A program made the translations under genes and the position numbers. A stretch of DNA of 64,000 nucleotides from assembly GCA_002269645.1 (NCBI GenBank), contig NIVC01003365.1, positions 37,608-101,607 on the forward strand, in the 5' to 3' direction. This document shows, piece after piece, positions 331-49,508 of the stretch; position 1 is the first letter of the stretch, and each line of letters starts with the position of its first letter. This DNA comes from Macrostomum lignano. Taxonomy: Eukaryota. The notes beneath the pieces were generated by a model, which did no database searches, was not told the origin of the DNA, and worked only from the letters and a program-made list of their open reading frames with translations.

Positions 331-490
331 GCTACACACAATCTTTAGAATATAGTGACCTACCCATACGCAGTTTTGAATTTGAGTAACATCACAAACA
401 CACAGTCACAATTTCAGTCACATCTTGGGTTTTGTATACAATAAGGCAATAAAATTATTTAAAATTTCTTCTCTTCAATCCCGAACGCAG

Positions 491-586
491 CGTACAATTG
501 TCCCGAGGGCACCGCCTACACCAGCTGCGGCCAGCTCCAAAGCCCATTTGTCTTCGCTAACGGACCCGACGTGCAGTGCCTGGAAG
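491..586 (+). CDS. ap2: ap2 exon, TIL-like Cys-rich (YNCPEGTAYTSCGQ...QCLE)
   Basis: cgcag| acceptor and G|gtgag donor; phase 1-1; Cys pattern continues into the next exon. Confidence 0.8.
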
Positions 587-3500
587 GTGAGAAAAGAGTT
601 CGCTTTGAGTCTCTGAGCAGCTCAGCGGTTAGCATCAGACTGCTCACAAGGGCCGGCCAGTCCCTGAGCCTGTGTACATGCCTGAAAATGGTAGATTGTT
701 TGACTGATTGACTTCAGTGGTCCTTGTAGATTGTATAGAATTTTTACCCAACACACCGGCCATTTTAACACACTTTTGAGCGGCCATTATTTCACACTTT
801 TAAATTTGATTTGATTTGACGAGAGATGGGGTGGGTGAACTGCTTGGCTTATCAGATTATCAGATTAGATAATAGGCGAGTCTATAAATGAGTCATAAAA
901 TTTTAATTAGTATACCTTTTCAACAACGGATTCGTCAAAAGTGAGTTCAAATTCGTCAGCGTATGCAAAACTATATAGCGCTCAAGGGGAAGAGAATGAG
1001 TGTCTATGGTAAATTTTTAGAGAAAGTGACTTCGAATTTGTCTAAGTAAGTGAAATTCGTCAGTACAAATACAGCCTGACCAGAAAAAGTGTTTGCTTTG
1101 TCCATGGTAAGAAAAGAAGGTGTCTATGGTAAATTTAAGTAAGAAAGTGAGTGAAGTTCGTCTGTGGAAAAGTAGCCCGATTTCTTGAAATCTTCATTTC
1201 ATGCTTTCATGCTTTGATGCTTTGAAAAGCTTGTTGCAGATTTTCCTGCTGCTCCTGCTGTGACAACGCAGGCAATCAGTCGTCGGCTTGACGGGACTTT
1301 GTGCGTTACATTGGCTGTTTGTTGTCATGTAGGGCATCTCTGACAACAATCAAAGCATGAAATGAAGATTTCAAGAAATCGGGCTACTTTTCCACAGACG
1401 AACTTCACTCACTTTCTTACTTAAATTTACCATAGACACTCATTCTCTTCCCCTTGAGCGCTATATAGTTTTGCATACGCTGACGAATTTGAACTCACTT
1501 TTGACGAATCCGAAGTTGAAAAGGTATATTATAAAATTAGTATGCCTGCTCTTATCAATTTGAAAAATCTGCCGCTGGAGTCGCTGAATGGTGTAACAAT
1601 GCCCGCTTTGACTTGTAAAATTGTGTCTGGGTAAAAGTTCTTTACAATGATAAACTCTAACTAGGCTGTTTTACCGTTTCACTGCAGACTGCCGATGCCG
1701 CATGGGTGGCCAGTGGACCCAGGCCGCCGGCAGCTGCACCGAGGCCAGCCATGTGTGCCGCTACAGAGCCGCCGTTTATCAGACTGGCGACTCAGCCAAA
1801 CTTGGCTGCCGTCAGTGGTGAGCTAAGCTTTGAGTTCATTGCGAAATTCTCAAGTATACGCATTCTGTTTAACAGAATATTAAATGCCAAATTAAATTCT
1901 TTTATCTACTCGTTCATCAAGCACCTGTCGAGAAGGCAAATGGATTCGATGCGACAACAAGGATTGTTATAGAAACACAACAATTGAGCTGAACAATTTG
2001 AGCACAGTTGGTAAGTCAAATTGAATGTTAGTTATTTGTAAAGCCTCATAGTACCTATTTAGAGAGTGAGCTATTGTATTGAATTGTCTATGGTAGAGAG
2101 TGAGCTACTGAATTGTCTATGGTAGAGAGTGAGCTATTGAATTGTCTATGGTAGAAAGTGAGCTATTGAATTGTCTATGGTACAGAGTGAGCTTTTAAAT
2201 TGTCTATGGTAGAGAGTGAGCTATTGAATTGTCTATGGTAGAGAGTGAGCTATTGAATTGTCTATGGTACAGAGTGAGCTACTGAATTGTCTATGGTAGA
2301 GAGTAGACCTTGAGTGTCTATGGTAGAGAGTGAGCTATTGAATTGTCTATGGTAGAGAGTGAGCTATTGAATTGTCTATGGTAGAGAGTGAGCTATTGAA
2401 TTGTCTATGGTAGAGAGTGAGCTATTGAATTGTCTATGGTACAGAGTGAGCTACTGAATTGTCTATGGTAGAGAGTAGACTTTGAGTGTCTATGGTAGAG
2501 AGTGAGCTATTGAATTGTCTATGGTAGAGAGTGAGCTATTGAATTGTCTATGGTAGAGAGTGAGCTACTGAATTGTCTATGGTAGAGAGTGAGCTATTGA
2601 ATTGTCTATGGTAGAAAGTGAGCTATTGAATTGTCTATGGTAGAGAGTGAGCTATTGAATTGTCTATGGTAGAGAGTGAGCTACTGAATTGTCTATGGTA
2701 GAGAGTAACCCTTGAGTGTCTATGGTAGAGAGTGAGCTATTGAATTTTCTATGGTAGAGAGTGAGCTTTTGAATTGTCTATGGTACAGAGTGAGCTACTG
2801 AATTGTCTATGGTAGAGAGTAGACCTTGAGTGTCTATGGTTGAGAGTGAGCTATTGAATTGTCTATGGTAGAGAGTGAGCTACTGAATTGTCTATGGTAG
2901 AGAGTGAGCTATTGAATTGTCTATGGTAGAGAGTAGACCTTGAGTGTCTATGATTGAGAGGATGGTTGCGAGTTTGAGTTGATTGATAGGGAGCACAATC
3001 ATTATCAATGTTTATATTATAGATCTATTGATAATAATGCGTGGGCGTATTCTTTCAGCGCCATGCACTGGACATTCGTTTGCTTGCCGAAATTCGGACG
3101 CCTGCCTGCACAGATCGAAGGTGTGCGATGGAGTCCCCGACTGTAGCGATGGTTCGGACGAGATGTCCTGCGGTAGGCTCTGCGATTAGTATCTTTACTA
3201 TTTTTAGAAACCAAAAAATAACCCTGGTATTATTTGAATCACCCAATTTGCAGAGGGCTGTCCCGCATTCAAGCTGAAGTGCCGCCGGTCCAATCTGTGT
3301 ATTGCCAAGTCGGAGGTCTGCGATGGCAAGCACCAGTGCCGCCTGGGCAACTCTACGGACGATTCGGACGAAGAGAACTGCGCAACCGGCGCTACAACAA
3401 GCGCGCCTCAGAAGAAGCCCATTGAAGGCACTGACAGCTGCTATCGGCCTCTGCTTCAGTCTGGACTAATCAAGGAGAGTCAGGTAAGAATTACTGAGAA

Positions 3501-6500
3501 CTTTGCGCCAACTCACGGCTACAGACGGGCCGAACTGCTGGACTCGCGTAAGCGGCCGTATTTGCTTAGCAAAGGCAGAACAGTGTTCGAGTTGCGACTC
3601 TCGCCAGCCGGCTCCGCTGTCCGCGTCAGCTCAGTGCTGCTGCAAATCCAGTCCAACCATCGTAGAGGACTGAAGGCGATTCGCTTGTACGCCAACTCCA
3701 ACAAGACCTGGCAGCTTCTGGAGGCAAAAGAGAGCAACATAGCCTGCACCCGCTGTCTTATTAAGCTCAACAAGCTACCATTCGCCGCTGAAAAGCTGAA
3801 GTTCAAAATCCAATCAAGGAGCTCGATGAAGATCCAATTGGAAATAAATGGTTGTCCAGGCCAAAATCTGGAATCGGGAAGGTGCCGCAGACTTCCAGCC
3901 ACTGCCTGCAATGTGAAGGTGTACAAGAGCATTACCTACAACAGAGAGTATTCGGGAGAGGAAAAAAGTCGTTTGGTTTTGCCACGGACGGAGTACTCAC
4001 TGCTCAAGCAGGGATCGAGTGAAATCGTCATTGGAGTCCCAGAAATGGTGCGAATCTGTGCAGTAATTATCAAGAGCAAACTGCCAAGCGATGGCAAGCC
4101 AACCGCTAATGTGGTTTCGTTTGTGTACGACAAGAAACTGAGCGAATTGACTCTTGTTTCTAAGCTTCCAGTTAGTACAAACACGACAACAATTACGATC
4201 AGCAAACCAACAAACGAGTATAAGGCCGTGCTGTACTCAAAAGATCCAATTAGAATATCAATTGAAATCCAGGTTAAAAAGCAACCAGTTACAAAGAACG
4301 AACCGAAGCAGCAGAAAATTGCTTGCAAAGGCTCCTTGCCGGACTCTGAAGTTAGTGGCAAAGTTCGAGTTCTAAGAATGACAGCGCTGGATTCACGTCA
4401 GGAATACACACAATCGGATCGAAGACAGCTTCTGCGCAAGGGCGCCGCGCTGAGTTCAGGAAGAACGGACGTACTTGTGCAGTTTAGTCTAAAGCAAACT
4501 GACGTCATTGAGGCGCTTCAAGTACTGACAACCACTCCAGGAGCCGACGCGAAAGTTACCGCTAGAGAACTGCAGCTTTGCACTCGAGACCGATGCTCAA
4601 AGGTCAAAATGTCTGCACCATCAGTCCAACAAACCAACATGGTCATTCGCGCGCGAGCCAGGTTTTTGAAAATCATTCTTGATTCTCCAACTAGCCACTA
4701 TGCAAAAAATGCAAAGCTGAAGTTTCACTTTTGTAGCAGGAATAAGCCGCACGTCTGCAAGGAAAGATACCTGGAGCGCTGCAATGTGCCACTAATGAAG
4801 AGCATTACATTTGGAAAGCGATATGACGCGTACACGGTAAAAGCACTGCTGCAAGGCCGGCCAGTAAGACTACTCAGAGGATATACAAAAATTACACTCA
4901 TCAATTTAAACCTTGCTGAGTCAGTAATATTAAAAAAAACCGGTGGTAGAAGACCTCTAAAACTAATAATTTCGCTCACCACTACTAATGAAAGGAAACG
5001 AAAAACTACGATAACAAAATTTGACACTGTCTACAGCGCCAAGCTTCCAACCGGCTACACAAAAATGATCATCACGATAAAATCAAAAGAACCGTCTAAA
5101 CTAGCACTCTTTAAAAAGGAATGCCAAAAACCCAACAAAATACCCAACCGAGAGCCAAAAACCGCTGCACACACAACCACTATCGCACCTGCAACGACAA
5201 CACTCGAACCGACAAAACGGCCAACAACGGCGAGCACTGCGGCCGCAAAGACAACCAAGGCCCCTGTGCTGACTACAACCACCAAGCGACGACGAGTGTG
5301 CAAGAAGAAGATGGCGTTCGACAGTAACGTGCTTCGTCCTGAGGATGTTGTGGAGGTGAAGCGCGTGCCGCAGAATGAGCCCTACGACGAGCCAGAGAAG
5401 AAGTCGCTGCTTCCAGGTAGACGCGGCCTGCCACTCAGAAAGGGTGACACGCTGGTCCGCATTGACCTGAGCAGGCTGCCGGAGGGAAGCCGGGTCGCCG
5501 AGATCAAGGTGAGCGCCGACAAGCCGAAGCGAATCACAAAGGTGTCTGTGACAGAAGTGACCAACAACGAGAGAACTCCGGTTGGCAAGGCTGAACAGCC
5601 AGGCGACGAGCCGTTGAGTCGCGACGACCTGGAATCGATCCCACTGACGCCGACCAGACGAACTCCCGACCTGATCGAGGTGCGAATCAGAAGAGGCTCC
5701 AAGCGACCCGTCAGGGTGACGCTGGAGGTCAAGGTGTGTCTCAAGAAGAAGCCGGCGACTACAACAACGCAGAGTACTACGACATCGGCAACGACAACGA
5801 GAAGACCGAGCACTGCCGGATTGACAACAGAAACAACGCGCACTACACGGGGCACACCGGCCGGCGAAAAGGTGACCTTCCCGATGCCGTCCATCACGAG
5901 CAGGAAATCGACCGGTAGAACTACGCGCCAGAAGAAGTCGACAACAACGGCTGGCAGATCGACAACGAGCACGTCGACGAAACGGCCAACGACGGCGAGC
6001 ACTGCGGCCGCAAAGACAACCAAGGCCCCTGTGCTGACTACAACCACCAAGCGACGACGAGTGTGCAAGAAGAAGATGGCGTTCGACAGTAACGTGCTTC
6101 GTCCTGAGGATGTTGTGGAGGTGAAGCGCGTGCCGCAGAATGAGCCCTACGACGAGCCAGAGAAGAAGTCGCTGCTTCCAGGTAGACGCGGCCTGCCACT
6201 CAGAAAGGGTGACACGCTGGTCCGCATTGACCTGAGCAGGCTGCCGGAGGGAAGCCGGGTCGCCGAGATCAAGGTGAGCGCCGACAAGCCGAAGCGAATC
6301 ACAAAGGTGTCTGTGACAGAAGTGACCAACAACGAGAGAACTCCGGTTGGCAAGGCTGAACAGCCAGGCGACGAGCCGTTGAGTCGCGACGACCTGGAAT
6401 CGATCCCACTGACGCCGACCAGACGAACTCCCGACCTGATCGAGGTGCGAATCAGAAGAGGCTCCAAGCGACCGTCAGGGTGACGCTGGAGGTCAAGGTG

Positions 6501-9500
6501 TGTCTCAAGAAGAAGCCGGCGACTACAACAACGCAGAGTACTACGACATCGGCAACGACAACGAGAAGACCGAGCACTGCCGGATTGACAACAGAAACAA
6601 CGCGCACTACACGGGGCACACCGGCCGGCGAAAAGGTGACCTTCCCGATGCCGTCCATCACGAGCAGGAAATCGACCGGTAGAACTACGCGCCAGAAGAA
6701 GTCGACAACAACGGCTGGCAGATCGACAACGAGCACGTCGACGAAACGGCCAACGACGGCGAGCACTGCGGCCGCAAAGACAACCAAGGCCCCTGTGCTG
6801 ACTACAACCACCAAGCGACGACGAGTGTGCAAGAAGAAGATGGCGTTCGACAGTAACGTGCTTCGTCCTGAGGATGTTGTGGAGGTGAAGCGCGTGCCGC
6901 AGAATGAGCCCTACGACGAGCCAGAGAAGAAGTCGCTGCTTCCAGGTAGACGCGGCCTGCCACTCAGAAAGGGTGACACGCTGGTCCGCATTGACCTGAG
7001 CAGGCTGCCGGAGGGAAGCCGGGTCGCCGAGATCAAGGTGAGCGCCGACAAGCCGAAGCGAATCACAAAGGTGTCTGTGACAGAAGTGACCAACAACGAG
7101 AGAACTCCGGTTGGCAAGGCTGAACAGCCAGGCGACGAGCCGTTGAGTCGCGACGACCTGGAATCGATCCCACTGACGCCGACCAGACGAACTCCCGACC
7201 TGATCGAGGTGCGAATCAGAAGAGGCTCCAAGCGACCGTCAGGGTGACGCTGGAGGTCAAGGTGTGTCTCAAGAAGAAGCCGGCGACTACAACAACGCAG
7301 AGTACTACGACATCGGCAACGACAACGAGAAGACCGAGCACTGCCGGATTGACAACAGAAACAACGCGCACTACACGGGGCACACCGGCCGGCGAAAAGG
7401 TGACCTTCCCGATGCCGTCCATCACGAGCAGGAAATCGACCGGTAGAACTACGCGCCAGAAGAAGTCGACAACAACGGCTGGCAGATCGACAACGAGCAC
7501 GTCGACGAAACGGCCAACGACGGCGAGCACTGCGGCCGCAAAGACAACCAAGGCCCCTGTGCTGACTACAACCACCAAGCGACGACGAGTGTGCAAGAAG
7601 AAGATGGCGTTCGACAGTAACGTGCTTCGTCCTGAGGATGTTGTGGAGGTGAAGCGCGTGCCGCAGAATGAGCCCTACGACGAGCCAGAGAAGAAGTCGC
7701 TGCTTCCAGGTAGACGCGGCCTGCCACTCAGAAAGGGTGACACGCTGGTCCGCATTGACCTGAGCAGGCTGCCGGAGGGAAGCCGGGTCGCCGAGATCAA
7801 GGTGAGCGCCGACAAGCCGAAGCGAATCACAAAGGTGTCTGTGACAGAAGTGACCAACAACGAGAGAACTCCGGTTGGCAAGGCTGAACAGCCAGGCGAC
7901 GAGCCGTTGAGTCGCGACGACCTGGAATCGATCCCACTGACGCCGACCAGACGAACTCCCGACCTGATCGAGGTGCGAATCAGAAGAGGCTCCAAGCGAC
8001 CGTCAGGGTGACGCTGGAGGTCAAGGTGTGTCTCAAGAAGAAGCCGGCGACTACAACAACGCAGAGTACTACGACATCGGCAACGACAACGAGAAGACCG
8101 AGCACTGCCGGATTGACAACAGAAACAACGCGCACTACACGGGGCACACCGGCCGGCGAAAAGGTGACCTTCCCGATGCCGTCCATCACGAGCAGGAAAT
8201 CGACCGGTAGAACTACGCGCCAGAAGAAGTCGACAACAACGGCTGGCAGATCGACAACGAGCACGTCGACGAAACGGCCAACGACGGCGAGCACTGCGGC
8301 CGCAAAGACAACCAAGGCCCCTGTGCTGACTACAACCACCAAGCGACGACGAGTGTGCAAGAAGAAGATGGCGTTCGACAGTAACGTGCTTCGTCCTGAG
8401 GATGTTGTGGAGGTGAAGCGCGTGCCGCAGAATGAGCCCTACGACGAGCCAGAGAAGAAGTCGCTGCTTCCAGGTAGACGCGGCCTGCCACTCAGAAAGG
8501 GTGACACGCTGGTCCGCATTGACCTGAGCAGGCTGCCGGAGGGAAGCCGGGTCGCCGAGATCAAGGTGAGCGCCGACAAGCCGAAGCGAATCACAAAGGT
8601 GTCTGTGACAGAAGTGACCAACAACGAGAGAACTCCGGTTGGCAAGGCTGAACAGCCAGGCGACGAGCCGTTGAGTCGCGACGACCTGGAATCGATCCCA
8701 CTGACGCCGACCAGACGAACTCCCGACCTGATCGAGGTGCGAATCAGAAGAGGCTCCAAGCGACCGTCAGGGTGACGCTGGAGGTCAAGGTGTGTCTCAA
8801 GAAGAAGCCGGCGACTACAACAACGCAGAGTACTACGACATCGGCAACGACAACGAGAAGACCGAGCACTGCCGGATTGACAACAGAAACAACGCGCACT
8901 ACACGGGGCACACCGGCCGGCGAAAAGGTGACCTTCCCGATGCCGTCCATCACGAGCAGGAAATCGACCGGTAGAACTACGCGCCAGAAGAAGTCGACAA
9001 CAACGGCTGGCAGATCGACAACGAGCACGTCGACGAAACGGCCAACGACGGCGAGCACTGCGGCCGCAAAGACAACCAAGGCCCCTGTGCTGACTACAAC
9101 CACCAAGCGACGACGAGTGTGCAAGAAGAAGATGGCGTTCGACAGTAACGTGCTTCGTCCTGAGGATGTTGTGGAGGTGAAGCGCGTGCCGCAGAATGAG
9201 CCCTACGACGAGCCAGAGAAGAAGTCGCTGCTTCCAGGTAGACGCGGCCTGCCACTCAGAAAGGGTGACACGCTGGTCCGCATTGACCTGAGCAGGCTGC
9301 CGGAGGGAAGCCGGGTCGCCGAGATCAAGGTGAGCGCCGACAAGCCGAAGCGAATCACAAAGGTGTCTGTGACAGAAGTGACCAACAACGAGAGAACTCC
9401 GGTTGGCAAGGCTGAACAGCCAGGCGACGAGCCGTTGAGTCGCGACGACCTGGAATCGATCCCACTGACGCCGACCAGACGAACTCCCGACCTGATCGAG

Positions 9501-12500
9501 GTGCGAATCAGAAGAGGCTCCAAGCGACCGTCAGGGTGACGCTGGAGGTCAAGGTGTGTCTCAAGAAGAAGCCGGCGACTACAACAACGCAGAGTACTAC
9601 GACATCGGCAACGACAACGAGAAGACCGAGCACTGCCGGATTGACAACAGAAACAACGCGCACTACACGGGGCACACCGGCCGGCGAAAAGGTGACCTTC
9701 CCGATGCCGTCCATCACGAGCAGGAAATCGACCGGTAGAACTACGCGCCAGAAGAAGTCGACAACAACGGCTGGCAGATCGACAACGAGCACGTCGACGA
9801 AACGGCCAACGACGGCGAGCACTGCGGCCGCAAAGACAACCAAGGCCCCTGTGCTGACTACAACCACCAAGCGACGACGAGTGTGCAAGAAGAAGATGGC
9901 GTTCGACAGTAACGTGCTTCGTCCTGAGGATGTTGTGGAGGTGAAGCGCGTGCCGCAGAATGAGCCCTACGACGAGCCAGAGAAGAAGTCGCTGCTTCCA
10001 GGTAGACGCGGCCTGCCACTCAGAAAGGGTGACACGCTGGTCCGCATTGACCTGAGCAGGCTGCCGGAGGGAAGCCGGGTCGCCGAGATCAAGGTGAGCG
10101 CCGACAAGCCGAAGCGAATCACAAAGGTGTCTGTGACAGAAGTGACCAACAACGAGAGAACTCCGGTTGGCAAGGCTGAACAGCCAGGCGACGAGCCGTT
10201 GAGTCGCGACGACCTGGAATCGATCCCACTGACGCCGACCAGACGAACTCCCGACCTGATCGAGGTGCGAATCAGAAGAGGCTCCAAGCGACCGTCAGGG
10301 TGACGCTGGAGGTCAAGGTGTGTCTCAAGAAGAAGCCGGCGACTACAACAACGCAGAGTACTACGACATCGGCAACGACAACGAGAAGACCGAGCACTGC
10401 CGGATTGACAACAGAAACAACGCGCACTACACGGGGCACACCGGCCGGCGAAAAGGTGACCTTCCCGATGCCGTCCATCACGAGCAGGAAATCGACCGGT
10501 AGAACTACGCGCCAGAAGAAGTCGACAACAACGGCTGGCAGATCGACAACGAGCACGTCGACGAAACGGCCAACGACGGCGAGCACTGCGGCCGCAAAGA
10601 CAACCAAGGCCCCTGTGCTGACTACAACCACCAAGCGACGACGAGTGTGCAAGAAGAAGATGGCGTTCGACAGTAACGTGCTTCGTCCTGAGGATGTTGT
10701 GGAGGTGAAGCGCGTGCCGCAGAATGAGCCCTACGACGAGCCAGAGAAGAAGTCGCTGCTTCCAGGTAGACGCGGCCTGCCACTCAGAAAGGGTGACACG
10801 CTGGTCCGCATTGACCTGAGCAGGCTGCCGGAGGGAAGCCGGGTCGCCGAGATCAAGGTGAGCGCCGACAAGCCGAAGCGAATCACAAAGGTGTCTGTGA
10901 CAGAAGTGACCAACAACGAGAGAACTCCGGTTGGCAAGGCTGAACAGCCAGGCGACGAGCCGTTGAGTCGCGACGACCTGGAATCGATCCCACTGACGCC
11001 GACCAGACGAACTCCCGACCTGATCGAGGTGCGAATCAGAAGAGGCTCCAAGCGACCGTCAGGGTGACGCTGGAGGTCAAGGTGTGTCTCAAGAAGAAGC
11101 CGGCGACTACAACAACGCAGAGTACTACGACATCGGCAACGACAACGAGAAGACCGAGCACTGCCGGATTGACAACAGAAACAACGCGCACTACACGGGG
11201 CACACCGGCCGGCGAAAAGGTGACCTTCCCGATGCCGTCCATCACGAGCAGGAAATCGACCGGTAGAACTACGCGCCAGAAGAAGTCGACAACAACGGCT
11301 GGCAGATCGACAACGAGCACGTCGACGAAACGGCCAACGACGGCGAGCACTGCGGCCGCAAAGACAACCAAGGCCCCTGTGCTGACTACAACCACCAAGC
11401 GACGACGAGTGTGCAAGAAGAAGATGGCGTTCGACAGTAACGTGCTTCGTCCTGAGGATGTTGTGGAGGTGAAGCGCGTGCCGCAGAATGAGCCCTACGA
11501 CGAGCCAGAGAAGAAGTCGCTGCTTCCAGGTAGACGCGGCCTGCCACTCAGAAAGGGTGACACGCTGGTCCGCATTGACCTGAGCAGGCTGCCGGAGGGA
11601 AGCCGGGTCGCCGAGATCAAGGTGAGCGCCGACAAGCCGAAGCGAATCACAAAGGTGTCTGTGACAGAAGTGACCAACAACGAGAGAACTCCGGTTGGCA
11701 AGGCTGAACAGCCAGGCGACGAGCCGTTGAGTCGCGACGACCTGGAATCGATCCCACTGACGCCGACCAGACGAACTCCCGACCTGATCGAGGTGCGAAT
11801 CAGAAGAGGCTCCAAGCGACCGTCAGGGTGACGCTGGAGGTCAAGGTGTGTCTCAAGAAGAAGCCGGCGACTACAACAACGCAGAGTACTACGACATCGG
11901 CAACGACAACGAGAAGACCGAGCACTGCCGGATTGACAACAGAAACAACGCGCACTACACGGGGCACACCGGCCGGCGAAAAGGTGACCTTCCCGATGCC
12001 GTCCATCACGAGCAGGAAATCGACCGGTAGAACTACGCGCCAGAAGAAGTCGACAACAACGGCTGGCAGATCGACAACGAGCACGTCGACGAAACGGCCA
12101 ACGACGGCGAGCACTGCGGCCGCAAAGACAACCAAGGCCCCTGTGCTGACTACAACCACCAAGCGACGACGAGTGTGCAAGAAGAAGATGGCGTTCGACA
12201 GTAACGTGCTTCGTCCTGAGGATGTTGTGGAGGTGAAGCGCGTGCCGCAGAATGAGCCCTACGACGAGCCAGAGAAGAAGTCGCTGCTTCCAGGTAGACG
12301 CGGCCTGCCACTCAGAAAGGGTGACACGCTGGTCCGCATTGACCTGAGCAGGCTGCCGGAGGGAAGCCGGGTCGCCGAGATCAAGGTGAGCGCCGACAAG
12401 CCGAAGCGAATCACAAAGGTGTCTGTGACAGAAGTGACCAACAACGAGAGAACTCCGGTTGGCAAGGCTGAACAGCCAGGCGACGAGCCGTTGAGTCGCG

Positions 12501-27500: not shown

Positions 27501-30500
27501 GGCCCTGCTGCCTAGCGGTAGTGGACTGCCAGTGAAGCGAGGCGGTTCCACCCAGCTCACCTTCCAGGTGGACCGTCTGCCAAAGACTGCCAGCCTGATG
27601 AAGGTGGTGCTCAAGAGCAGCACGCCGGACAGTGTTCGCGAGGTGACCGTGTTTGTGGCCGACGAGGACAAGCCAGAGAAGTACGTGCAAGTGAACAGGG
27701 AGACGCCGAAGGAGCCTAAGAAGGCGCTGAGCCCAAGCCAACTAGAGAATGTGGAATTCCCCGAGCTGCCGAAGCTGCCCAAGTTTGTGCGCGTCGTGCT
27801 GAAGACGCTGCCAGGCAAGGCGACTAGCGTCAGAGCCGAGTTGAAGGCTTGCCACAAGCCGAAGACTACCGTTAGGACGACACAACAGACGACGACCACG
27901 ACGGGACGCACAACACCGAGCACGACAAGCAGGAAGCCGGGATCGCCAGCCGCCGAGAAGCTCACCTTCCCGATGCCGTCGATGCCAGGAGCGACAGGAA
28001 AGACAACGACAACGCCGGCGCCTACTACAACAACAAGACGCCCGGCCGTGTGCCTGCGCAAGAGCGTGAAACTGTTTGAGAGCGGCGAGCTGCCCAGCGA
28101 CGCGCTGACCAAGGCGGAGAAGCTCCCAGAGAAGAAGGAGTTCACACCCAAGGAGCGAAAGGAGGCCCTGCTGCCTAGCGGTAGTGGACTGCCAGTGAAG
28201 CGAGGCGGTTCCACCCAGCTCACCTTCCAGGTGGACCGTCTGCCAAAGACTGCCAGCCTGATGAAGGTGGTGCTCAAGAGCAGCACGCCGGACAGTGTTC
28301 GCGAGGTGACCGTGTTTGTGGCCGACGAGGACAAGCCAGAGAAGTACGTGCAAGTGAACAGGGAGACGCCGAAGGAGCCTAAGAAGGCGCTGAGCCCAAG
28401 CCAACTAGAGAATGTGGAATTCCCCGAGCTGCCGAAGCTGCCCAAGTTTGTGCGCGTCGTGCTGAAGACGCTGCCAGGCAAGGCGACTAGCGTCAGAGCC
28501 GAGTTGAAGGCTTGCCACAAGCCGAAGACTACCGTTAGGACGACACAACAGACGACGACCACGACGGGACGCACAACACCGAGCACGACAAGCAGGAAGC
28601 CGGGATCGCCAGCCGCCGAGAAGCTCACCTTCCCGATGCCGTCGATGCCAGGAGCGACAGGAAAGACAACGACAACGCCGGCGCCTACTACAACAACAAG
28701 ACGCCCGGCCGTGTGCCTGCGCAAGAGCGTGAAACTGTTTGAGAGCGGCGAGCTGCCCAGCGACGCGCTGACCAAGGCGGAGAAGCTCCCAGAGAAGAAG
28801 GAGTTCACACCCAAGGAGCGAAAGGAGGCCCTGCTGCCTAGCGGTAGTGGACTGCCAGTGAAGCGAGGCGGTTCCACCCAGCTCACCTTCCAGGTGGACC
28901 GTCTGCCAAAGACTGCCAGCCTGATGAAGGTGGTGCTCAAGAGCAGCACGCCGGACAGTGTTCGCGAGGTGACCGTGTTTGTGGCCGACGAGGACAAGCC
29001 AGAGAAGTACGTGCAAGTGAACAGGGAGACGCCGAAGGAGCCTAAGAAGGCGCTGAGCCCAAGCCAACTAGAGAATGTGGAATTCCCCGAGCTGCCGAAG
29101 CTGCCCAAGTTTGTGCGCGTCGTGCTGAAGACGCTGCCAGGCAAGGCGACTAGCGTCAGAGCCGAGTTGAAGGCTTGCCACAAGCCGAAGACTACCGTTA
29201 GGACGACACAACAGACGACGACCACGACGGGACGCACAACACCGAGCACGACAAGCAGGAAGCCGGGATCGCCAGCCGCCGAGAAGCTCACCTTCCCGAT
29301 GCCGTCGATGCCAGGAGCGACAGGAAAGACAACGACAACGCCGGCGCCTACTACAACAACAAGACGCCCGGCCGTGTGCCTGCGCAAGAGCGTGAAACTG
29401 TTTGAGAGCGGCGAGCTGCCCAGCGACGCGCTGACCAAGGCGGAGAAGCTCCCAGAGAAGAAGGAGTTCACACCCAAGGAGCGAAAGGAGGCCCTGCTGC
29501 CTAGCGGTAGTGGACTGCCAGTGAAGCGAGGCGGTTCCACCCAGCTCACCTTCCAGGTGGACCGTCTGCCAAAGACTGCCAGCCTGATGAAGGTGGTGCT
29601 CAAGAGCAGCACGCCGGACAGTGTTCGCGAGGTGACCGTGTTTGTGGCCGACGAGGACAAGCCAGAGAAGTACGTGCAAGTGAACAGGGAGACGCCGAAG
29701 GAGCCTAAGAAGGCGCTGAGCCCAAGCCAACTAGAGAATGTGGAATTCCCCGAGCTGCCGAAGCTGCCCAAGTTTGTGCGCGTCGTGCTGAAGACGCTGC
29801 CAGGCAAGGCGACTAGCGTCAGAGCCGAGTTGAAGGCTTGCCACAAGCCGAAGACTACCGTTAGGACGACACAACAGACGACGACCACGACGGGACGCAC
29901 AACACCGAGCACGACAAGCAGGAAGCCGGGATCGCCAGCCGCCGAGAAGCTCACCTTCCCGATGCCGTCGATGCCAGGAGCGACAGGAAAGACAACGACA
30001 ACGCCGGCGCCTACTACAACAACAAGACGCCCGGCCGTGTGCCTGCGCAAGAGCGTGAAACTGTTTGAGAGCGGCGAGCTGCCCAGCGACGCGCTGACCA
30101 AGGCGGAGAAGCTCCCAGAGAAGAAGGAGTTCACACCCAAGGAGCGAAAGGAGGCCCTGCTGCCTAGCGGTAGTGGACTGCCAGTGAAGCGAGGCGGTTC
30201 CACCCAGCTCACCTTCCAGGTGGACCGTCTGCCAAAGACTGCCAGCCTGATGAAGGTGGTGCTCAAGAGCAGCACGCCGGACAGTGTTCGCGAGGTGACC
30301 GTGTTTGTGGCCGACGAGGACAAGCCAGAGAAGTACGTGCAAGTGAACAGGGAGACGCCGAAGGAGCCTAAGAAGGCGCTGAGCCCAAGCCAACTAGAGA
30401 ATGTGGAATTCCCCGAGCTGCCGAAGCTGCCCAAGTTTGTGCGCGTCGTGCTGAAGACGCTGCCAGGCAAGGCGACTAGCGTCAGAGCCGAGTTGAAGGC

Positions 30501-33500
30501 TTGCCACAAGCCGAAGACTACCGTTAGGACGACACAACAGACGACGACCACGACGGGACGCACAACACCGAGCACGACAAGCAGGAAGCCGGGATCGCCA
30601 GCCGCCGAGAAGCTCACCTTCCCGATGCCGTCGATGCCAGGAGCGACAGGAAAGACAACGACAACGCCGGCGCCTACTACAACAACAAGACGCCCGGCCG
30701 TGTGCCTGCGCAAGAGCGTGAAACTGTTTGAGAGCGGCGAGCTGCCCAGCGACGCGCTGACCAAGGCGGAGAAGCTCCCAGAGAAGAAGGAGTTCACACC
30801 CAAGGAGCGAAAGGAGGCCCTGCTGCCTAGCGGTAGTGGACTGCCAGTGAAGCGAGGCGGTTCCACCCAGCTCACCTTCCAGGTGGACCGTCTGCCAAAG
30901 ACTGCCAGCCTGATGAAGGTGGTGCTCAAGAGCAGCACGCCGGACAGTGTTCGCGAGGTGACCGTGTTTGTGGCCGACGAGGACAAGCCAGAGAAGTACG
31001 TGCAAGTGAACAGGGAGACGCCGAAGGAGCCTAAGAAGGCGCTGAGCCCAAGCCAACTAGAGAATGTGGAATTCCCCGAGCTGCCGAAGCTGCCCAAGTT
31101 TGTGCGCGTCGTGCTGAAGACGCTGCCAGGCAAGGCGACTAGCGTCAGAGCCGAGTTGAAGGCTTGCCACAAGCCGAAGACTACCGTTAGGACGACACAA
31201 CAGACGACGACCACGACGGGACGCACAACACCGAGCACGACAAGCAGGAAGCCGGGATCGCCAGCCGCCGAGAAGCTCACCTTCCCGATGCCGTCGATGC
31301 CAGGAGCGACAGGAAAGACAACGACAACGCCGGCGCCTACTACAACAACAAGACGCCCGGCCGTGTGCCTGCGCAAGAGCGTGAAACTGTTTGAGAGCGG
31401 CGAGCTGCCCAGCGACGCGCTGACCAAGGCGGAGAAGCTCCCAGAGAAGAAGGAGTTCACACCCAAGGAGCGAAAGGAGGCCCTGCTGCCTAGCGGTAGT
31501 GGACTGCCAGTGAAGCGAGGCGGTTCCACCCAGCTCACCTTCCAGGTGGACCGTCTGCCAAAGACTGCCAGCCTGATGAAGGTGGTGCTCAAGAGCAGCA
31601 CGCCGGACAGTGTTCGCGAGGTGACCGTGTTTGTGGCCGACGAGGACAAGCCAGAGAAGTACGTGCAAGTGAACAGGGAGACGCCGAAGGAGCCTAAGAA
31701 GGCGCTGAGCCCAAGCCAACTAGAGAATGTGGAATTCCCCGAGCTGCCGAAGCTGCCCAAGTTTGTGCGCGTCGTGCTGAAGACGCTGCCAGGCAAGGCG
31801 ACTAGCGTCAGAGCCGAGTTGAAGGCTTGCCACAAGCCGAAGACTACCGTTAGGACGACACAACAGACGACGACCACGACGGGACGCACAACACCGAGCA
31901 CGACAAGCAGGAAGCCGGGATCGCCAGCCGCCGAGAAGCTCACCTTCCCGATGCCGTCGATGCCAGGAGCGACAGGAAAGACAACGACAACGCCGGCGCC
32001 TACTACAACAACAAGACGCCCGGCCGTGTGCCTGCGCAAGAGCGTGAAACTGTTTGAGAGCGGCGAGCTGCCCAGCGACGCGCTGACCAAGGCGGAGAAG
32101 CTCCCAGAGAAGAAGGAGTTCACACCCAAGGAGCGAAAGGAGGCCCTGCTGCCTAGCGGTAGTGGACTGCCAGTGAAGCGAGGCGGTTCCACCCAGCTCA
32201 CCTTCCAGGTGGACCGTCTGCCAAAGACTGCCAGCCTGATGAAGGTGGTGCTCAAGAGCAGCACGCCGGACAGTGTTCGCGAGGTGACCGTGTTTGTGGC
32301 CGACGAGGACAAGCCAGAGAAGTACGTGCAAGTGAACAGGGAGACGCCGAAGGAGCCTAAGAAGGCGCTGAGCCCAAGCCAACTAGAGAATGTGGAATTC
32401 CCCGAGCTGCCGAAGCTGCCCAAGTTTGTGCGCGTCGTGCTGAAGACGCTGCCAGGCAAGGCGACTAGCGTCAGAGCCGAGTTGAAGGCTTGCCACAAGC
32501 CGAAGACTACCGTTAGGACGACACAACAGACGACGACCACGACGGGACGCACAACACCGAGCACGACAAGCAGGAAGCCGGGATCGCCAGCCGCCGAGAA
32601 GCTCACCTTCCCGATGCCGTCGATGCCAGGAGCGACAGGAAAGACAACGACAACGCCGGCGCCTACTACAACAACAAGACGCCCGGCCGTGTGCCTGCGC
32701 AAGAGCGTGAAACTGTTTGAGAGCGGCGAGCTGCCCAGCGACGCGCTGACCAAGGCGGAGAAGCTCCCAGAGAAGAAGGAGTTCACACCCAAGGAGCGAA
32801 AGGAGGCCCTGCTGCCTAGCGGTAGTGGACTGCCAGTGAAGCGAGGCGGTTCCACCCAGCTCACCTTCCAGGTGGACCGTCTGCCAAAGACTGCCAGCCT
32901 GATGAAGGTGGTGCTCAAGAGCAGCACGCCGGACAGTGTTCGCGAGGTGACCGTGTTTGTGGCCGACGAGGACAAGCCAGAGAAGTACGTGCAAGTGAAC
33001 AGGGAGACGCCGAAGGAGCCTAAGAAGGCGCTGAGCCCAAGCCAACTAGAGAATGTGGAATTCCCCGAGCTGCCGAAGCTGCCCAAGTTTGTGCGCGTCG
33101 TGCTGAAGACGCTGCCAGGCAAGGCGACTAGCGTCAGAGCCGAGTTGAAGGCTTGCCACAAGCCGAAGACTACCGTTAGGACGACACAACAGACGACGAC
33201 CACGACGGGACGCACAACACCGAGCACGACAAGCAGGAAGCCGGGATCGCCAGCCGCCGAGAAGCTCACCTTCCCGATGCCGTCGATGCCAGGAGCGACA
33301 GGAAAGACAACGACAACGCCGGCGCCTACTACAACAACAAGACGCCCGGCCGTGTGCCTGCGCAAGAGCGTGAAACTGTTTGAGAGCGGCGAGCTGCCCA
33401 GCGACGCGCTGACCAAGGCGGAGAAGCTCCCAGAGAAGAAGGAGTTCACACCCAAGGAGCGAAAGGAGGCCCTGCTGCCTAGCGGTAGTGGACTGCCAGT

Positions 33501-36500
33501 GAAGCGAGGCGGTTCCACCCAGCTCACCTTCCAGGTGGACCGTCTGCCAAAGACTGCCAGCCTGATGAAGGTGGTGCTCAAGAGCAGCACGCCGGACAGT
33601 GTTCGCGAGGTGACCGTGTTTGTGGCCGACGAGGACAAGCCAGAGAAGTACGTGCAAGTGAACAGGGAGACGCCGAAGGAGCCTAAGAAGGCGCTGAGCC
33701 CAAGCCAACTAGAGAATGTGGAATTCCCCGAGCTGCCGAAGCTGCCCAAGTTTGTGCGCGTCGTGCTGAAGACGCTGCCAGGCAAGGCGACTAGCGTCAG
33801 AGCCGAGTTGAAGGCTTGCCACAAGCCGAAGACTACCGTTAGGACGACACAACAGACGACGACCACGACGGGACGCACAACACCGAGCACGACAAGCAGG
33901 AAGCCGGGATCGCCAGCCGCCGAGAAGCTCACCTTCCCGATGCCGTCGATGCCAGGAGCGACAGGAAAGACAACGACAACGCCGGCGCCTACTACAACAA
34001 CAAGACGCCCGGCCGTGTGCCTGCGCAAGAGCGTGAAACTGTTTGAGAGCGGCGAGCTGCCCAGCGACGCGCTGACCAAGGCGGAGAAGCTCCCAGAGAA
34101 GAAGGAGTTCACACCCAAGGAGCGAAAGGAGGCCCTGCTGCCTAGCGGTAGTGGACTGCCAGTGAAGCGAGGCGGTTCCACCCAGCTCACCTTCCAGGTG
34201 GACCGTCTGCCAAAGACTGCCAGCCTGATGAAGGTGGTGCTCAAGAGCAGCACGCCGGACAGTGTTCGCGAGGTGACCGTGTTTGTGGCCGACGAGGACA
34301 AGCCAGAGAAGTACGTGCAAGTGAACAGGGAGACGCCGAAGGAGCCTAAGAAGGCGCTGAGCCCAAGCCAACTAGAGAATGTGGAATTCCCCGAGCTGCC
34401 GAAGCTGCCCAAGTTTGTGCGCGTCGTGCTGAAGACGCTGCCAGGCAAGGCGACTAGCGTCAGAGCCGAGTTGAAGGCTTGCCACAAGCCGAAGACTACC
34501 GTTAGGACGACACAACAGACGACGACCACGACGGGACGCACAACACCGAGCACGACAAGCAGGAAGCCGGGATCGCCAGCCGCCGAGAAGCTCACCTTCC
34601 CGATGCCGTCGATGCCAGGAGCGACAGGAAAGACAACGACAACGCCGGCGCCTACTACAACAACAAGACGCCCGGCCGTGTGCCTGCGCAAGAGCGTGAA
34701 ACTGTTTGAGAGCGGCGAGCTGCCCAGCGACGCGCTGACCAAGGCGGAGAAGCTCCCAGAGAAGAAGGAGTTCACACCCAAGGAGCGAAAGGAGGCCCTG
34801 CTGCCTAGCGGTAGTGGACTGCCAGTGAAGCGAGGCGGTTCCACCCAGCTCACCTTCCAGGTGGACCGTCTGCCAAAGACTGCCAGCCTGATGAAGGTGG
34901 TGCTCAAGAGCAGCACGCCGGACAGTGTTCGCGAGGTGACCGTGTTTGTGGCCGACGAGGACAAGCCAGAGAAGTACGTGCAAGTGAACAGGGAGACGCC
35001 GAAGGAGCCTAAGAAGGCGCTGAGCCCAAGCCAACTAGAGAATGTGGAATTCCCCGAGCTGCCGAAGCTGCCCAAGTTTGTGCGCGTCGTGCTGAAGACG
35101 CTGCCAGGCAAGGCGACTAGCGTCAGAGCCGAGTTGAAGGCTTGCCACAAGCCGAAGACTACCGTTAGGACGACACAACAGACGACGACCACGACGGGAC
35201 GCACAACACCGAGCACGACAAGCAGGAAGCCGGGATCGCCAGCCGCCGAGAAGCTCACCTTCCCGATGCCGTCGATGCCAGGAGCGACAGGAAAGACAAC
35301 GACAACGCCGGCGCCTACTACAACAACAAGACGCCCGGCCGTGTGCCTGCGCAAGAGCGTGAAACTGTTTGAGAGCGGCGAGCTGCCCAGCGACGCGCTG
35401 ACCAAGGCGGAGAAGCTCCCAGAGAAGAAGGAGTTCACACCCAAGGAGCGAAAGGAGGCCCTGCTGCCTAGCGGTAGTGGACTGCCAGTGAAGCGAGGCG
35501 GTTCCACCCAGCTCACCTTCCAGGTGGACCGTCTGCCAAAGACTGCCAGCCTGATGAAGGTGGTGCTCAAGAGCAGCACGCCGGACAGTGTTCGCGAGGT
35601 GACCGTGTTTGTGGCCGACGAGGACAAGCCAGAGAAGTACGTGCAAGTGAACAGGGAGACGCCGAAGGAGCCTAAGAAGGCGCTGAGCCCAAGCCAACTA
35701 GAGAATGTGGAATTCCCCGAGCTGCCGAAGCTGCCCAAGTTTGTGCGCGTCGTGCTGAAGACGCTGCCAGGCAAGGCGACTAGCGTCAGAGCCGAGTTGA
35801 AGGCTTGCCACAAGCCGAAGACTACCGTTAGGACGACACAACAGACGACGACCACGACGGGACGCACAACACCGAGCACGACAAGCAGGAAGCCGGGATC
35901 GCCAGCCGCCGAGAAGCTCACCTTCCCGATGCCGTCGATGCCAGGAGCGACAGGAAAGACAACGACAACGCCGGCGCCTACTACAACAACAAGACGCCCG
36001 GCCGTGTGCCTGCGCAAGAGCGTGAAACTGTTTGAGAGCGGCGAGCTGCCCAGCGACGCGCTGACCAAGGCGGAGAAGCTCCCAGAGAAGAAGGAGTTCA
36101 CACCCAAGGAGCGAAAGGAGGCCCTGCTGCCTAGCGGTAGTGGACTGCCAGTGAAGCGAGGCGGTTCCACCCAGCTCACCTTCCAGGTGGACCGTCTGCC
36201 AAAGACTGCCAGCCTGATGAAGGTGGTGCTCAAGAGCAGCACGCCGGACAGTGTTCGCGAGGTGACCGTGTTTGTGGCCGACGAGGACAAGCCAGAGAAG
36301 TACGTGCAAGTGAACAGGGAGACGCCGAAGGAGCCTAAGAAGGCGCTGAGCCCAAGCCAACTAGAGAATGTGGAATTCCCCGAGCTGCCGAAGCTGCCCA
36401 AGTTTGTGCGCGTCGTGCTGAAGACGCTGCCAGGCAAGGCGACTAGCGTCAGAGCCGAGTTGAAGGCTTGCCACAAGCCGAAGACTACCGTTAGGACGAC

Positions 36501-39500
36501 ACAACAGACGACGACCACGACGGGACGCACAACACCGAGCACGACAAGCAGGAAGCCGGGATCGCCAGCCGCCGAGAAGCTCACCTTCCCGATGCCGTCG
36601 ATGCCAGGAGCGACAGGAAAGACAACGACAACGCCGGCGCCTACTACAACAACAAGACGCCCGGCCGTGTGCCTGCGCAAGAGCGTGAAACTGTTTGAGA
36701 GCGGCGAGCTGCCCAGCGACGCGCTGACCAAGGCGGAGAAGCTCCCAGAGAAGAAGGAGTTCACACCCAAGGAGCGAAAGGAGGCCCTGCTGCCTAGCGG
36801 TAGTGGACTGCCAGTGAAGCGAGGCGGTTCCACCCAGCTCACCTTCCAGGTGGACCGTCTGCCAAAGACTGCCAGCCTGATGAAGGTGGTGCTCAAGAGC
36901 AGCACGCCGGACAGTGTTCGCGAGGTGACCGTGTTTGTGGCCGACGAGGACAAGCCAGAGAAGTACGTGCAAGTGAACAGGGAGACGCCGAAGGAGCCTA
37001 AGAAGGCGCTGAGCCCAAGCCAACTAGAGAATGTGGAATTCCCCGAGCTGCCGAAGCTGCCCAAGTTTGTGCGCGTCGTGCTGAAGACGCTGCCAGGCAA
37101 GGCGACTAGCGTCAGAGCCGAGTTGAAGGCTTGCCACAAGCCGAAGACTACCGTTAGGACGACACAACAGACGACGACCACGACGGGACGCACAACACCG
37201 AGCACGACAAGCAGGAAGCCGGGATCGCCAGCCGCCGAGAAGCTCACCTTCCCGATGCCGTCGATGCCAGGAGCGACAGGAAAGACAACGACAACGCCGG
37301 CGCCTACTACAACAACAAGACGCCCGGCCGTGTGCCTGCGCAAGAGCGTGAAACTGTTTGAGAGCGGCGAGCTGCCCAGCGACGCGCTGACCAAGGCGGA
37401 GAAGCTCCCAGAGAAGAAGGAGTTCACACCCAAGGAGCGAAAGGAGGCCCTGCTGCCTAGCGGTAGTGGACTGCCAGTGAAGCGAGGCGGTTCCACCCAG
37501 CTCACCTTCCAGGTGGACCGTCTGCCAAAGACTGCCAGCCTGATGAAGGTGGTGCTCAAGAGCAGCACGCCGGACAGTGTTCGCGAGGTGACCGTGTTTG
37601 TGGCCGACGAGGACAAGCCAGAGAAGTACGTGCAAGTGAACAGGGAGACGCCGAAGGAGCCTAAGAAGGCGCTGAGCCCAAGCCAACTAGAGAATGTGGA
37701 ATTCCCCGAGCTGCCGAAGCTGCCCAAGTTTGTGCGCGTCGTGCTGAAGACGCTGCCAGGCAAGGCGACTAGCGTCAGAGCCGAGTTGAAGGCTTGCCAC
37801 AAGCCGAAGACTACCGTTAGGACGACACAACAGACGACGACCACGACGGGACGCACAACACCGAGCACGACAAGCAGGAAGCCGGGATCGCCAGCCGCCG
37901 AGAAGCTCACCTTCCCGATGCCGTCGATGCCAGGAGCGACAGGAAAGACAACGACAACGCCGGCGCCTACTACAACAACAAGACGCCCGGCCGTGTGCCT
38001 GCGCAAGAGCGTGAAACTGTTTGAGAGCGGCGAGCTGCCCAGCGACGCGCTGACCAAGGCGGAGAAGCTCCCAGAGAAGAAGGAGTTCACACCCAAGGAG
38101 CGAAAGGAGGCCCTGCTGCCTAGCGGTAGTGGACTGCCAGTGAAGCGAGGCGGTTCCACCCAGCTCACCTTCCAGGTGGACCGTCTGCCAAAGACTGCCA
38201 GCCTGATGAAGGTGGTGCTCAAGAGCAGCACGCCGGACAGTGTTCGCGAGGTGACCGTGTTTGTGGCCGACGAGGACAAGCCAGAGAAGTACGTGCAAGT
38301 GAACAGGGAGACGCCGAAGGAGCCTAAGAAGGCGCTGAGCCCAAGCCAACTAGAGAATGTGGAATTCCCCGAGCTGCCGAAGCTGCCCAAGTTTGTGCGC
38401 GTAATAGTTCAAGTTTTGGCTGAGATGTCACGATGTCTCTTTGGATCTATTTTCGTGTCAGGATGATTTTTATCCATGTATGAATTGCACACACAACGGG
38501 ACTTCGTACATTGAAGGCTCGATTGTATCGCTTAATGGAGTCAAATGTGATCATCAGTAAGTGTTTAACGCGACTTGTAGTTTTTGGAGTTAAAGTTTTT
38601 GTTTATTGTGAATTTCTTCGTTTTTAGTGTGTGCCGGAAACGATCGTGGGAGCCTCTTTATGACTGCTCGTCATGGAGTTCCTGGTCAAACTGCTCGTCG
38701 GAATGCGATGCCGGATTCAAGACTAGGATGAAGATCTGTCGGTCTAGTTTCCGGGATCTGATTGCAAGGCAAAATCTGACGTCGTTGGAAAAGTGCTTTA
38801 ACCAGGTCGAGCGAGAACCGTGTTTTAACAGAAGATGCTCTAGTATGTATTTTTTGCAATGCTCTTCTTCGTCACTTGAATTTTCGTTAATCTACTGCAA
38901 TTTTGTTTTTTTTTCAGAAACTGAGTGCAACCCTGCAGAATGGGGTCCCTGGAGCCCGTGCTCTGGAGAGTGCAGCACTTTGCTTTCAGAGCGGAAGCGG
39001 CAGCCGGGCAGCGCTGTGTTGTCAGAATTTTGCAAGAAAGTTCAACTGCCAGAATCGCGCATGTGCCCGAAAACGGAAAAGTGCCGTAAGTTTAGAATCT
39101 GCTTTTTTATTAGTAATTCCTTCTTTGTATACCGAGACGCATTCCATTGTGCTTTACTATTCTTTATTTAGTCTTGCTCTTTTAAAGTAGGATTTAAATC
39201 ATTTTCCTCTTTCAGTGTGCAAGGATCCCAATGCAGCGTGGAACAACTGCTCAAACCAATGTCCTTTCACATGCGGCCACCTCTCCGAGCAATCTGCGTG
39301 TGTCATGACCTCTGCCTGCGTGCCTGGGTGCGCGTGCAAGCCAGGCTATTACCTGCAGGACGGCCGCTGCGTACCGCAGTCGCAGTGCCGCTGCCCAGGT
39401 CTCACACCAACTACATTGGCGATTAGTACAACTGCACTGACGACTCCCAGTACTGGAGCCGCTGCCGCCTTGTTTGTGTCTTACTCAAGTCCAAAGGCTC

Positions 39501-49445: not shown

Positions 49446-49508
49446 AGTGTCATTGTTGATGGACTATCAACAGGAGTTGCATTCGCTTAATCACCGCTCA
49501 ATGAAAAT

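Follow-up and report, generated by a model that had tools for sequence, protein, structure and literature searches.

We wanted to determine what kind of protein is encoded by the giant repeated core of a flatworm adhesive gene. The DNA analysed, called the window below, is a stretch of 64,000 nucleotides (nt) from Macrostomum lignano (GenBank assembly GCA_002269645.1, contig NIVC01003365.1, positions 37,608 to 101,607 of the forward strand). It holds most of the gene for adhesion protein 2 of M. lignano, Mlig-ap2. We identified the gene because its 21 units of 765 nt and 25 units of 663 nt equal the 21 repeats of 255 amino acids (aa) and 25 repeats of 221 aa published for this glycosylated protein (Wunderer et al. 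2019, PMC6410801), and because LDL domains lie on the N-terminal side and TSP1 and TIL domains on the C-terminal side, as published. The lectin PNA labels Mlig-ap2, which touches the substrate, and attachment is abolished when the protein is knocked down by RNA interference (PMC6410801, PMC8621496). No other flatworm protein has been proposed to contact the substrate, and the repeats make up approximately two-thirds to three-quarters of Mlig-ap2. Both papers give the repeats, RP-1 and RP-2, as "of unknown function", with no domain assigned, in agreement with what an earlier note on this DNA had stated. The word "discoidin" does not occur in either of them, and the published work reported no homologue in NCBI.

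The earlier note, made from the letters of the window alone, had proposed that the core is a chain of highly diverged discoidin folds. According to our models and comparisons, the modules are most probably real folded domains, which would form a new and very divergent family of the discoidin or galactose-binding-like fold. We estimate at approximately 0.6 the probability that the Mlig-ap2 core consists of about 50 Cys-bracketed jelly-roll modules of such a family, acting as beads spaced by mucin-like linkers in an avidity type of adhesion. The gene and its repeat structure were already known. What is new is the fold assignment, the related arrays in metagenomes, a frameshift that truncates public gene models, and the unique modules M1 to M4 between the LDL-receptor class A (LDLa) domains and RP-1, which are not described in the published papers (PMC6410801, PMC8621496). 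The features that carry the argument are as follows.

3253..38400, + strand: giant Mlig-ap2 exon of 35,148 nt, containing the second LDLa domain, M1 to M4, the repeat-1 array and the repeat-2 array
3439..3855, + strand: module M1, 139 aa, Cys to Cys, a predicted discoidin-like jelly roll (AlphaFold2 model and Foldseek)
3883..4275, + strand: module M2, 131 aa, with an N-terminal Cys and no closing Cys at this boundary
4324..4734, + strand: module M3, 137 aa, Cys to Cys
4756..5124, + strand: module M4, 123 aa, Cys to Cys
5296..21417, + strand: repeat-1 array, 21 units of 765 nt (255 aa), from anchor count and periods
21418..38400, + strand: repeat-2 array, 25 units of 663 nt (221 aa) and a truncated 26th, from anchor count

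Each repeat-1 unit consists of a 147-aa Cys-to-Cys module (R1; the first at 5299-5739) and a 108-aa Thr-rich basic linker, while each repeat-2 unit consists of a 155-aa Cys-to-Cys module (R2; the first at 21421-21885) and a 66-aa Thr/Pro-rich linker. The repeat-1 anchor occurs 21 times (5296..20578) with a period of 765/764 nt. For repeat-2 there are 26 anchors (21418..37993), spaced 663 nt apart, and the 26th unit is cut by the splice donor at 38400. Together with M1 to M4 we counted 50 complete modules and one truncated module, which agrees with the array of about 50 proposed earlier. Translation also reproduced all coordinates, lengths and motifs given in the earlier note, including those of R1, R2 and M1; the latter begins with CYRPLLQSGLIKESQVRIT, includes IRLYANSNKTWQ and terminates with MKIQLEINGC. 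The claim that all modules are bracketed by Cys residues held for R1, R2, M1, M3 and M4. It did not hold for M2, where the closing Cys is absent and the next Cys is the one assigned to M3, nor for the 26th repeat-2 module, which is truncated.

The modules have a basic pI of 9.5-10.4 and a net charge of +8 to +20; neither R1 nor R2 contains any Trp, aromatic residues being few. Ser and Thr together make up 46% of the repeat-1 linker (pI 12) and 41% of the repeat-2 linker, which additionally contains 15% Pro. A non-mucin motif within the Thr-rich sequence, EK[VL]TFPMPS, is common to both linker types (46 copies, one per unit, the first at 5875); its role may lie in docking or processing, or it may form a short structural element.

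We modelled R1 and M1 with AlphaFold2. The alignment used for R1 comprised the six window modules, the one used for M1 comprised 13 rows. The R1 model reached a predicted local distance difference test score (pLDDT) of 91.3 and a predicted template modelling score (pTM) of 0.87, with eight main strands, and all five R1 models scored at least 87. For M1 the values were 82.7 and 0.77, respectively. When the two models were compared through the sequence alignment, their strands coincided (54 of the 63 R1 strand residues). Both sequences are therefore predicted with high confidence to be compact eight-stranded beta-sandwiches, from very shallow alignments, which supports the earlier claim that the repeats are not disordered. 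No low-pLDDT model, no model other than a beta-sandwich and no confident match to an unrelated fold was obtained for either module.

Further, we compared the models with solved structures in the PDB, using Foldseek. M1 gave 105 matches at E <= 1e-3, the best of them to factor V (E = 9.6e-7). The top of its list consisted of factor V C domains, neuropilin-1 b1b2, APC10, neuropilin-2, IFT25, factor VIII, the CASPR2 discoidin domain, many CBM32 domains and DDR1. Matches to galactose-binding-like families had E values of 1e-6 to 1e-4 and TM scores of 0.53-0.70, with 0.6-0.68 for the discoidin-type domains (neuropilin-1 b1b2, 0.68; CASPR2 discoidin, 0.66; DDR1, 0.65; factor V C2, 0.63). R1 was matched less closely (E 9e-4 to 1e-2, TM 0.36-0.53), with BT0459, for which a GH20 activity is published, at the top, and with peptidylglycine monooxygenase (PHM), the HECTD3 DOC domain, SUN2, the furin P domain, CBM6, CBM32 and CBM51 among the matches. 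Its highest TM score was to the HECTD3 DOC domain (0.53/0.56). CBM32 appeared only at rank 43 (2v72; TM 0.47, E = 9e-3), no better than jelly rolls outside FA58C. Three entries, 6q63, 2v72 and 8auw, were common to the two lists. On the models, both modules would belong to the class of galactose-binding-domain-like jelly-roll beta-sandwiches. M1 looks structurally like a discoidin (FA58C-like) domain, while R1 appears to be a derived form of the fold that lacks a close solved neighbour; the 46 repeat modules, R1 and R2, would then be a more derived version of the fold of M1. In the structural check that the earlier note had proposed, true FA58C domains come out on top for M1, and the matches of R1 are weak and non-specific.

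The modules were also compared with each other by sequence. R1 and R2 are 24% identical over 152 aa (BLASTP, E = 8e-9), with a shuffle z-score of 11.4. The shuffle z-scores of the remaining modules were 6.2 for M2 and M4, 5.9 for M3 and R1, 5.5 for M4 and R1, and 5.0 for M2 and R1. These values indicate that the window modules are homologous to one another, as had been suggested from their shared motifs, with the reservation that M1 behaves as an outlier and is linked mainly through homologues from the environment.

The latter were found as follows. Close database matches to the window modules came solely from M. lignano gene-model fragments, and the module sequences are present letter for letter in such fragments in UniRef and NCBI. 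In a word-indexed homologue search the queries M1 to M4 gave no match and R1 and R2 only M. lignano fragments; the same type of search with a 12-sequence profile gave two environmental fragments and nothing further. An exhaustive profile search, which covered 1.84 billion representative proteins, retrieved five short proteins, with matches across the entire module at E values of 3e-6 to 4e-4. The contigs that encode them come from marine metagenome assemblies, are eukaryote-like and carry tandem module arrays, and one of them (L003) comes from a study of marine biofilm. In the contig L001 (12.6 kb, 40% GC; array at 1-11044) two module types alternate with a period of 1,422 nt. Here each module occupies one exon, with Thr-rich mini-exons in between, in contrast to the single 35-kb exon of M. 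lignano. Altogether there are 11 distinct environmental modules, all of which run from Cys to Cys over 146-154 aa and are followed by TTT-rich sequence; their linkers are much shorter than those of Mlig-ap2. R1 is closer to one of these modules (28% identity end to end, E = 5e-11) than to R2. M2 and M3 also gave high shuffle z-scores with environmental modules (8.2 with L003d and 8.7 with L004, respectively). In an alignment of 17 sequences the first Cys is conserved in 17/17 and the last in 16/17; one Gly is invariant, and one Tyr and two Leu are nearly so. These similarities point to homologous arrays outside M. lignano, which are described here for the first time, and related arrays in marine biofilm metagenomes are already picked up by the module profile.

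Other matches were rejected. Flavobacteriia repeat proteins (P0007-P0014, e.g. from Aurantibacter and Cellulophaga; E 1e-27 to 1e-7) were judged to reflect compositional or repeat inflation and not homology, because they matched only profile columns of approximately 36-100, through many short repeated stretches (e.g. ...GTTEITVDLSAL...). They are bacterial beta-strand repeat proteins.

Several results weigh against the assignment to discoidin domains. With hmmscan at E <= 10, neither the six window modules nor any member of the 17-sequence family matched Pfam PF00754, and what did appear at this threshold (SsgA, DYW, PDZ_Tricorn and similar) was regarded as noise. A search of all PDB sequences with the family profile (hmmsearch) found no discoidin match, and a phmmer search of PDB sequences with M1 found nothing relevant. 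For hhalign we used as a reference six FA58C domains verified against PDB chains. The family reached a probability of 5.3%, or 7.8% when M1 was left out, and M1 by itself reached 2.2%; these values come from a small profile (Neff 3.1) and could differ in a deep HHpred search. The only segment aligned was N-terminal, 48 columns around C..LGM.S..I...QI, to which the earlier note had pointed as well. Two PROSITE-type FA58C patterns, [GASP]-W-...-[FYW]-[LIV]-x-[LIVFA]-[GSTDEN]-...-[QKMT]-G and P-x(8,10)-[LM]-R-x-[GE]-[LIVP]-x-G-C, were missing from all six modules, whereas both controls, factor VIII C2 and factor V C2, contain them. The conserved Trp and Gln-Gly residues of FA58C are missing from the modules as well. 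M1, the most discoidin-like module by structure, aligned only weakly with the remaining window modules (shuffle z <= 2.5). Its z-scores with two environmental homologues were 6.0 and 5.1 (P of approximately 3e-3, corrected for 11 tests), and hhalign aligned it end to end with the family profile built without it (129 columns, E = 2.7e-4) at a probability of 42%, so that we grade its link to the family as moderate. For R1, a single Foldseek match reached E <= 1e-3, and FA58C and CBM32 domains scored no better than DOC, PHM and SUN. The two AlphaFold2 alignments (6 and 13 sequences) share rows, and the agreement between the models is not independent. Finally, 17 repeat-1 copies are frameshifted as assembled. 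At the sensitivity of these searches the modules are not detectable members of Pfam F5_F8_type_C. The earlier claim therefore stands at the level of the fold, as predicted by AlphaFold2 and Foldseek, and falls short at the level of FA58C membership, where Pfam, hhalign (2-8%) and the signatures all failed.

We compared Mlig-ap2 with known adhesive and mucin-like proteins. The sea-star protein Sfp1 is a secreted footprint protein of temporary adhesion with tandem discoidin-type domains. The sea-urchin adhesive Nectin, a secreted footprint protein of temporary underwater adhesion, contains six tandem FA58C domains (PMC10057474). These are canonical, 47-55% identical to each other, and stand back to back without long linkers rich in Pro, Thr and Ser (PTS), whereas the modules of Mlig-ap2 number about 50, have diverged strongly and each precede a linker of the O-glycosylation type. 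By this analogy Nectin would be the nearest functional counterpart of Mlig-ap2. Mucins such as MUC2 and MUC5AC have PTS regions interrupted by small folded CysD domains. The arrangement, PTS sequence interrupted by small Cys-containing domains, is like that of ap2, but CysD has a different, 10-Cys fold.

In terms of architecture, the flanks of ap2 resemble those of SCO-spondin, mucins and VWF (VWD-C8-TIL ... LDLa ... (FA5/8C) ... TSP1/TIL ... cystine knot). SCO-spondin contains VWD, LDLrA, one FA5/8C, TSR, TIL and CTCK domains (PMC8487547); it differs from ap2 in that its FA5/8C domain is single and a PTS-spaced array is lacking. The corresponding parts in the window are two LDLa domains, TSP1, TIL and a sub-threshold Cys_knot, together with M1, which is FA58C-like by structure only. 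For the VWD domain of Mlig-ap2 the only sources are the paper (PMC6410801) and the name given to the upstream gene model in its source. M1 lies directly after the LDLa domains, like the FA5/8C of SCO-spondin, which suggests that duplication of that domain, and divergence of the copies, gave rise to the array, and that the protein may have had its origin in an SCO-spondin-like scaffold.

We propose the following mechanism. The conserved terminal Cys pair would be joined in an N-to-C disulfide, as is usual in discoidin domains. A module may then be a stapled pendant bead, in which tensile load passes through the disulfide and the sandwich is not unfolded. The linkers would bear Gal-beta1,3-GalNAc, known as the O-glycan of Mlig-ap2, and could serve as stiff, hydrated and extended spacers. 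Adhesion would be a matter of avidity: each chain would present approximately 50 positively charged loop faces, which would bind weakly one by one and together may hold strongly yet reversibly to negatively charged or glycan-coated (biofilm) surfaces. Lectin-like contacts with the O-glycans of the same chain or of neighbouring ap2 chains are possible as well. Through the VWD/C8/TIL and cystine-knot-like ends the chains might be linked into polymers, in the manner of mucins, VWF and SCO-spondin. We infer that the modules may bind glycans, lipids or collagen.

The models could be an over-prediction of AlphaFold from tiny alignments of paralogues, and the repeats could be largely disordered or adopt another fold. 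The small number of aligned sequences, the lack of a close structural neighbour of R1 and the abundance of charged residues and proline would fit such an explanation. We consider it highly improbable, since the five R1 models agree with each other (pLDDT 87-91), M1 was modelled separately and reaches a known fold at an E value of 1e-6, and the alternation of hydrophobic and polar residues along the strands, the invariant Gly, the conserved Tyr and Leu and the Cys pair are kept in 17 sequences at 14-30% identity. More serious are two other readings. The modules could be folded jelly rolls that do not descend from discoidin and belong to another, or a convergent, branch of the galactose-binding-like fold, similar to DOC/APC10, CBM6, SUN or PHM, in which case the likeness of M1 would be an analogy of fold. 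The best matches of R1 (BT0459, PHM, HECTD3 DOC, SUN2, furin P and CBM6, with CBM32 not before rank 43) and the failure of every sequence test for FA58C speak for this, and DOC/APC10 (HECTD3, HERC2), IFT25, CBM6, furin P, SUN and PHM form the fold class common to the top matches of both models. These domains differ from the ap2 modules in being intracellular or enzymatic, in lacking both a terminal Cys pair and tandem arrays with mucin linkers, and in showing no sequence similarity to them. FA58C/discoidin domains (PF00754 including CBM32; factor V/VIII C, neuropilin b1/b2, DDR1, CASPR2, retinoschisin) share with the modules a length of approximately 140-155 aa, the first and last Cys and the eight-strand jelly roll, and differ in their conserved Trp, TQG, GN and P...LRxExxGC signature. 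Their N-terminal motif, C..[LV]GM[ED]S..I...[QK]I, is echoed in the ap2 family: C-x3-[VL]-G-M-[DE]-S..[FI]...[KQ]-I stands beside C..PLGMES..I...QI of FA58C, and hhalign picks out this motif, not significantly. The top matches of M1 are mostly bona fide FA58C and CBM32 domains (E 1e-6 to 1e-4), and M1 is placed where architectures of the SCO-spondin type have FA5/8C. We consider descent from another branch unlikely. The second serious reading accepts the fold and holds that the modules are for the most part inert, serving as mechanical or spacing beads like mucin CysD or the Ig/FN3 domains of titin, while binding is the work of the O-glycosylated basic linkers and of charge. The composition of the linkers (pI 12, Ser plus Thr 41-46%), the EK[VL]TFPMPS motif that both types share, the known glycosylation of Mlig-ap2, and the absence of Trp and scarcity of aromatic residues in R1 and R2, unlike the ligand-binding loops of many discoidin and CBM32 domains, are in line with it. 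The modules are conserved across distant environmental homologues with much shorter linkers, they are themselves basic, and their fold class overwhelmingly serves binding; we find inert beads somewhat unlikely.

The state of the assembly has to be weighed too, since the locus could be a non-functional copy or a mis-assembly, with frameshifts and identical copies as marks of degeneration or collapse and with an unreliable module count. The reading frame of the giant exon is unbroken apart from 17 single-base deletions, of which the first is:

6466..6483, + strand: first of 17 identical single-C deletions, CGACCCGTC -> CGACCGTC, recurring every 764 nt up to 18690 (to 18707)

The deletions lie in repeat-1 copies 2-18, which are 100% identical to each other and all carry CCC -> CC. 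Each deletion shifts the frame 10 codons ahead of the closing Cys and leads to a TGA. Only copies 1, 19, 20 and 21 are in frame, and these four adjoin unique sequence. The 25 complete repeat-2 units (21418-37992) are all identical at the DNA level, which reflects either very recent homogenisation or the consensus made by the assembler, and which may hide variation between copies. Such a loss confined to identical internal copies, the uniformity of repeat-2, a tandem duplication of the 3' end of the gene at 99.25% identity and public gene models that break at the frameshift are what a degenerate or collapsed locus could look like. The number and sizes of the units nevertheless equal those of the published protein. 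The gene model PAA86063.1 (P0005) stops at the repeat-1 frameshift (...GSKRPSG), and an older M. lignano model, P0006, has an intact internal repeat-1 unit and other errors elsewhere. Because public models end at the frameshift while P0006 contains an intact unit, the 17 frameshifts are probably a homopolymer consensus or assembly error of long reads, which suits these data better than a pseudogene. We regard a dead or wrongly assembled locus as quite improbable, and the frameshift is flagged here as one that truncates public gene models.

A further idea, which goes beyond the avidity reading and which we judge decidedly unlikely, is that the ap2 module represents an ancient, hitherto overlooked family, whose origin was the one discoidin domain of an SCO-spondin-like ancestor. 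It would be the surface-binding unit common to the temporary glues of flatworm orders and of other marine biofilm meiofauna, the supposedly non-conserved adhesive proteins Mlig-ap2, Mile-ap2 and Tmed-ap2 would be homologous at the level of domains, and the module would be a lectin for O-glycans of the Gal-beta1,3-GalNAc type, including those on its own linkers. If this were true, the glue would be a self-crosslinking network of lectin and mucin, in which disulfide-stapled beads resist unfolding under load.

The fold assignment reduces a problem of 14,794 aa to an expressible unit of 147 aa, with which the fold, the disulfide and the binding of glycans, lipids and surfaces can be tested directly, and gives a testable idea of how a reversible underwater glue may grip surfaces. 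It would also link a flatworm glue to an echinoderm glue, since Nectin consists of six discoidin domains.

Outside the repeats, the Mlig-ap2 locus in the window is eukaryotic, contains introns and lies on the + strand. The remaining features are:

3055..3171, + strand: exon with LDLa domain 1 (Pfam PF00057, E = 2.6e-12), with intron sequence on either side
3253..3385, + strand: LDLa domain 2 (Pfam PF00057, E = 1.1e-5; score 25.9 bits, cut-off 24.1)
38462..47151, + strand: downstream Mlig-ap2 exons with TSP1 repeats, TIL domains, a Pro/Thr-rich region and a cystine-knot-like C-terminus (Pfam and reconstructed splice junctions)

The giant exon has its acceptor at 3253 (...ttgcag|AGGGC) and its donor after 38400 (GCGC|GTAATAG). 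In the downstream exons Pfam found TSP_1/TSP1_spondin (E down to 6e-17), TIL (2.2e-11) and Cys_knot (3.5e-4, under the cut-off). Between the giant exon and the first TSP1 exon (region 38401-38627) lies a small exon, 38462-38556, which encodes DDFYPCMNCTHNGTSYIEGSIVSLNGVKCDH and is joined to the truncated 26th repeat-2 module (...PKFVR). In public models this exon is skipped or its intron is read through. In the Pro/Thr-rich region 3' of the first TIL domain, the motif RIRGTAA[PD]D-x4-[LM][LR]IP occurs four times, at 39500, 39691, 39817 and 40591. Copy 1 is in another frame than copies 2-4, and this change suggests a small intron or a further frameshift near 39600.

On the opposite strand there is an open reading frame of 5,908 aa (20664-38390, minus) and a ladder of 220-aa minus-strand open reading frames. 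We do not regard these as genes; the repeat is stop-free on that strand.

The tandem segmental duplication at the 3' end comprises approximately 10.3 kb (42293-52616 compared with 53830-64000) with a period of about 11.5 kb. It copies the last TSP1 and the cystine-knot-like exons of the gene together with downstream satellites, and may be genuine or an artefact of assembly or haplotypes. Dense minisatellites with periods of 20-48 nt and up to 33 copies were observed in the introns and flanks (31-330, 2077-2934, 46256-46605, 48588-49451 and 49909-50170), and one of them, an 858-nt array of a 29-nt unit, lies immediately 5' of the LDLa exon.

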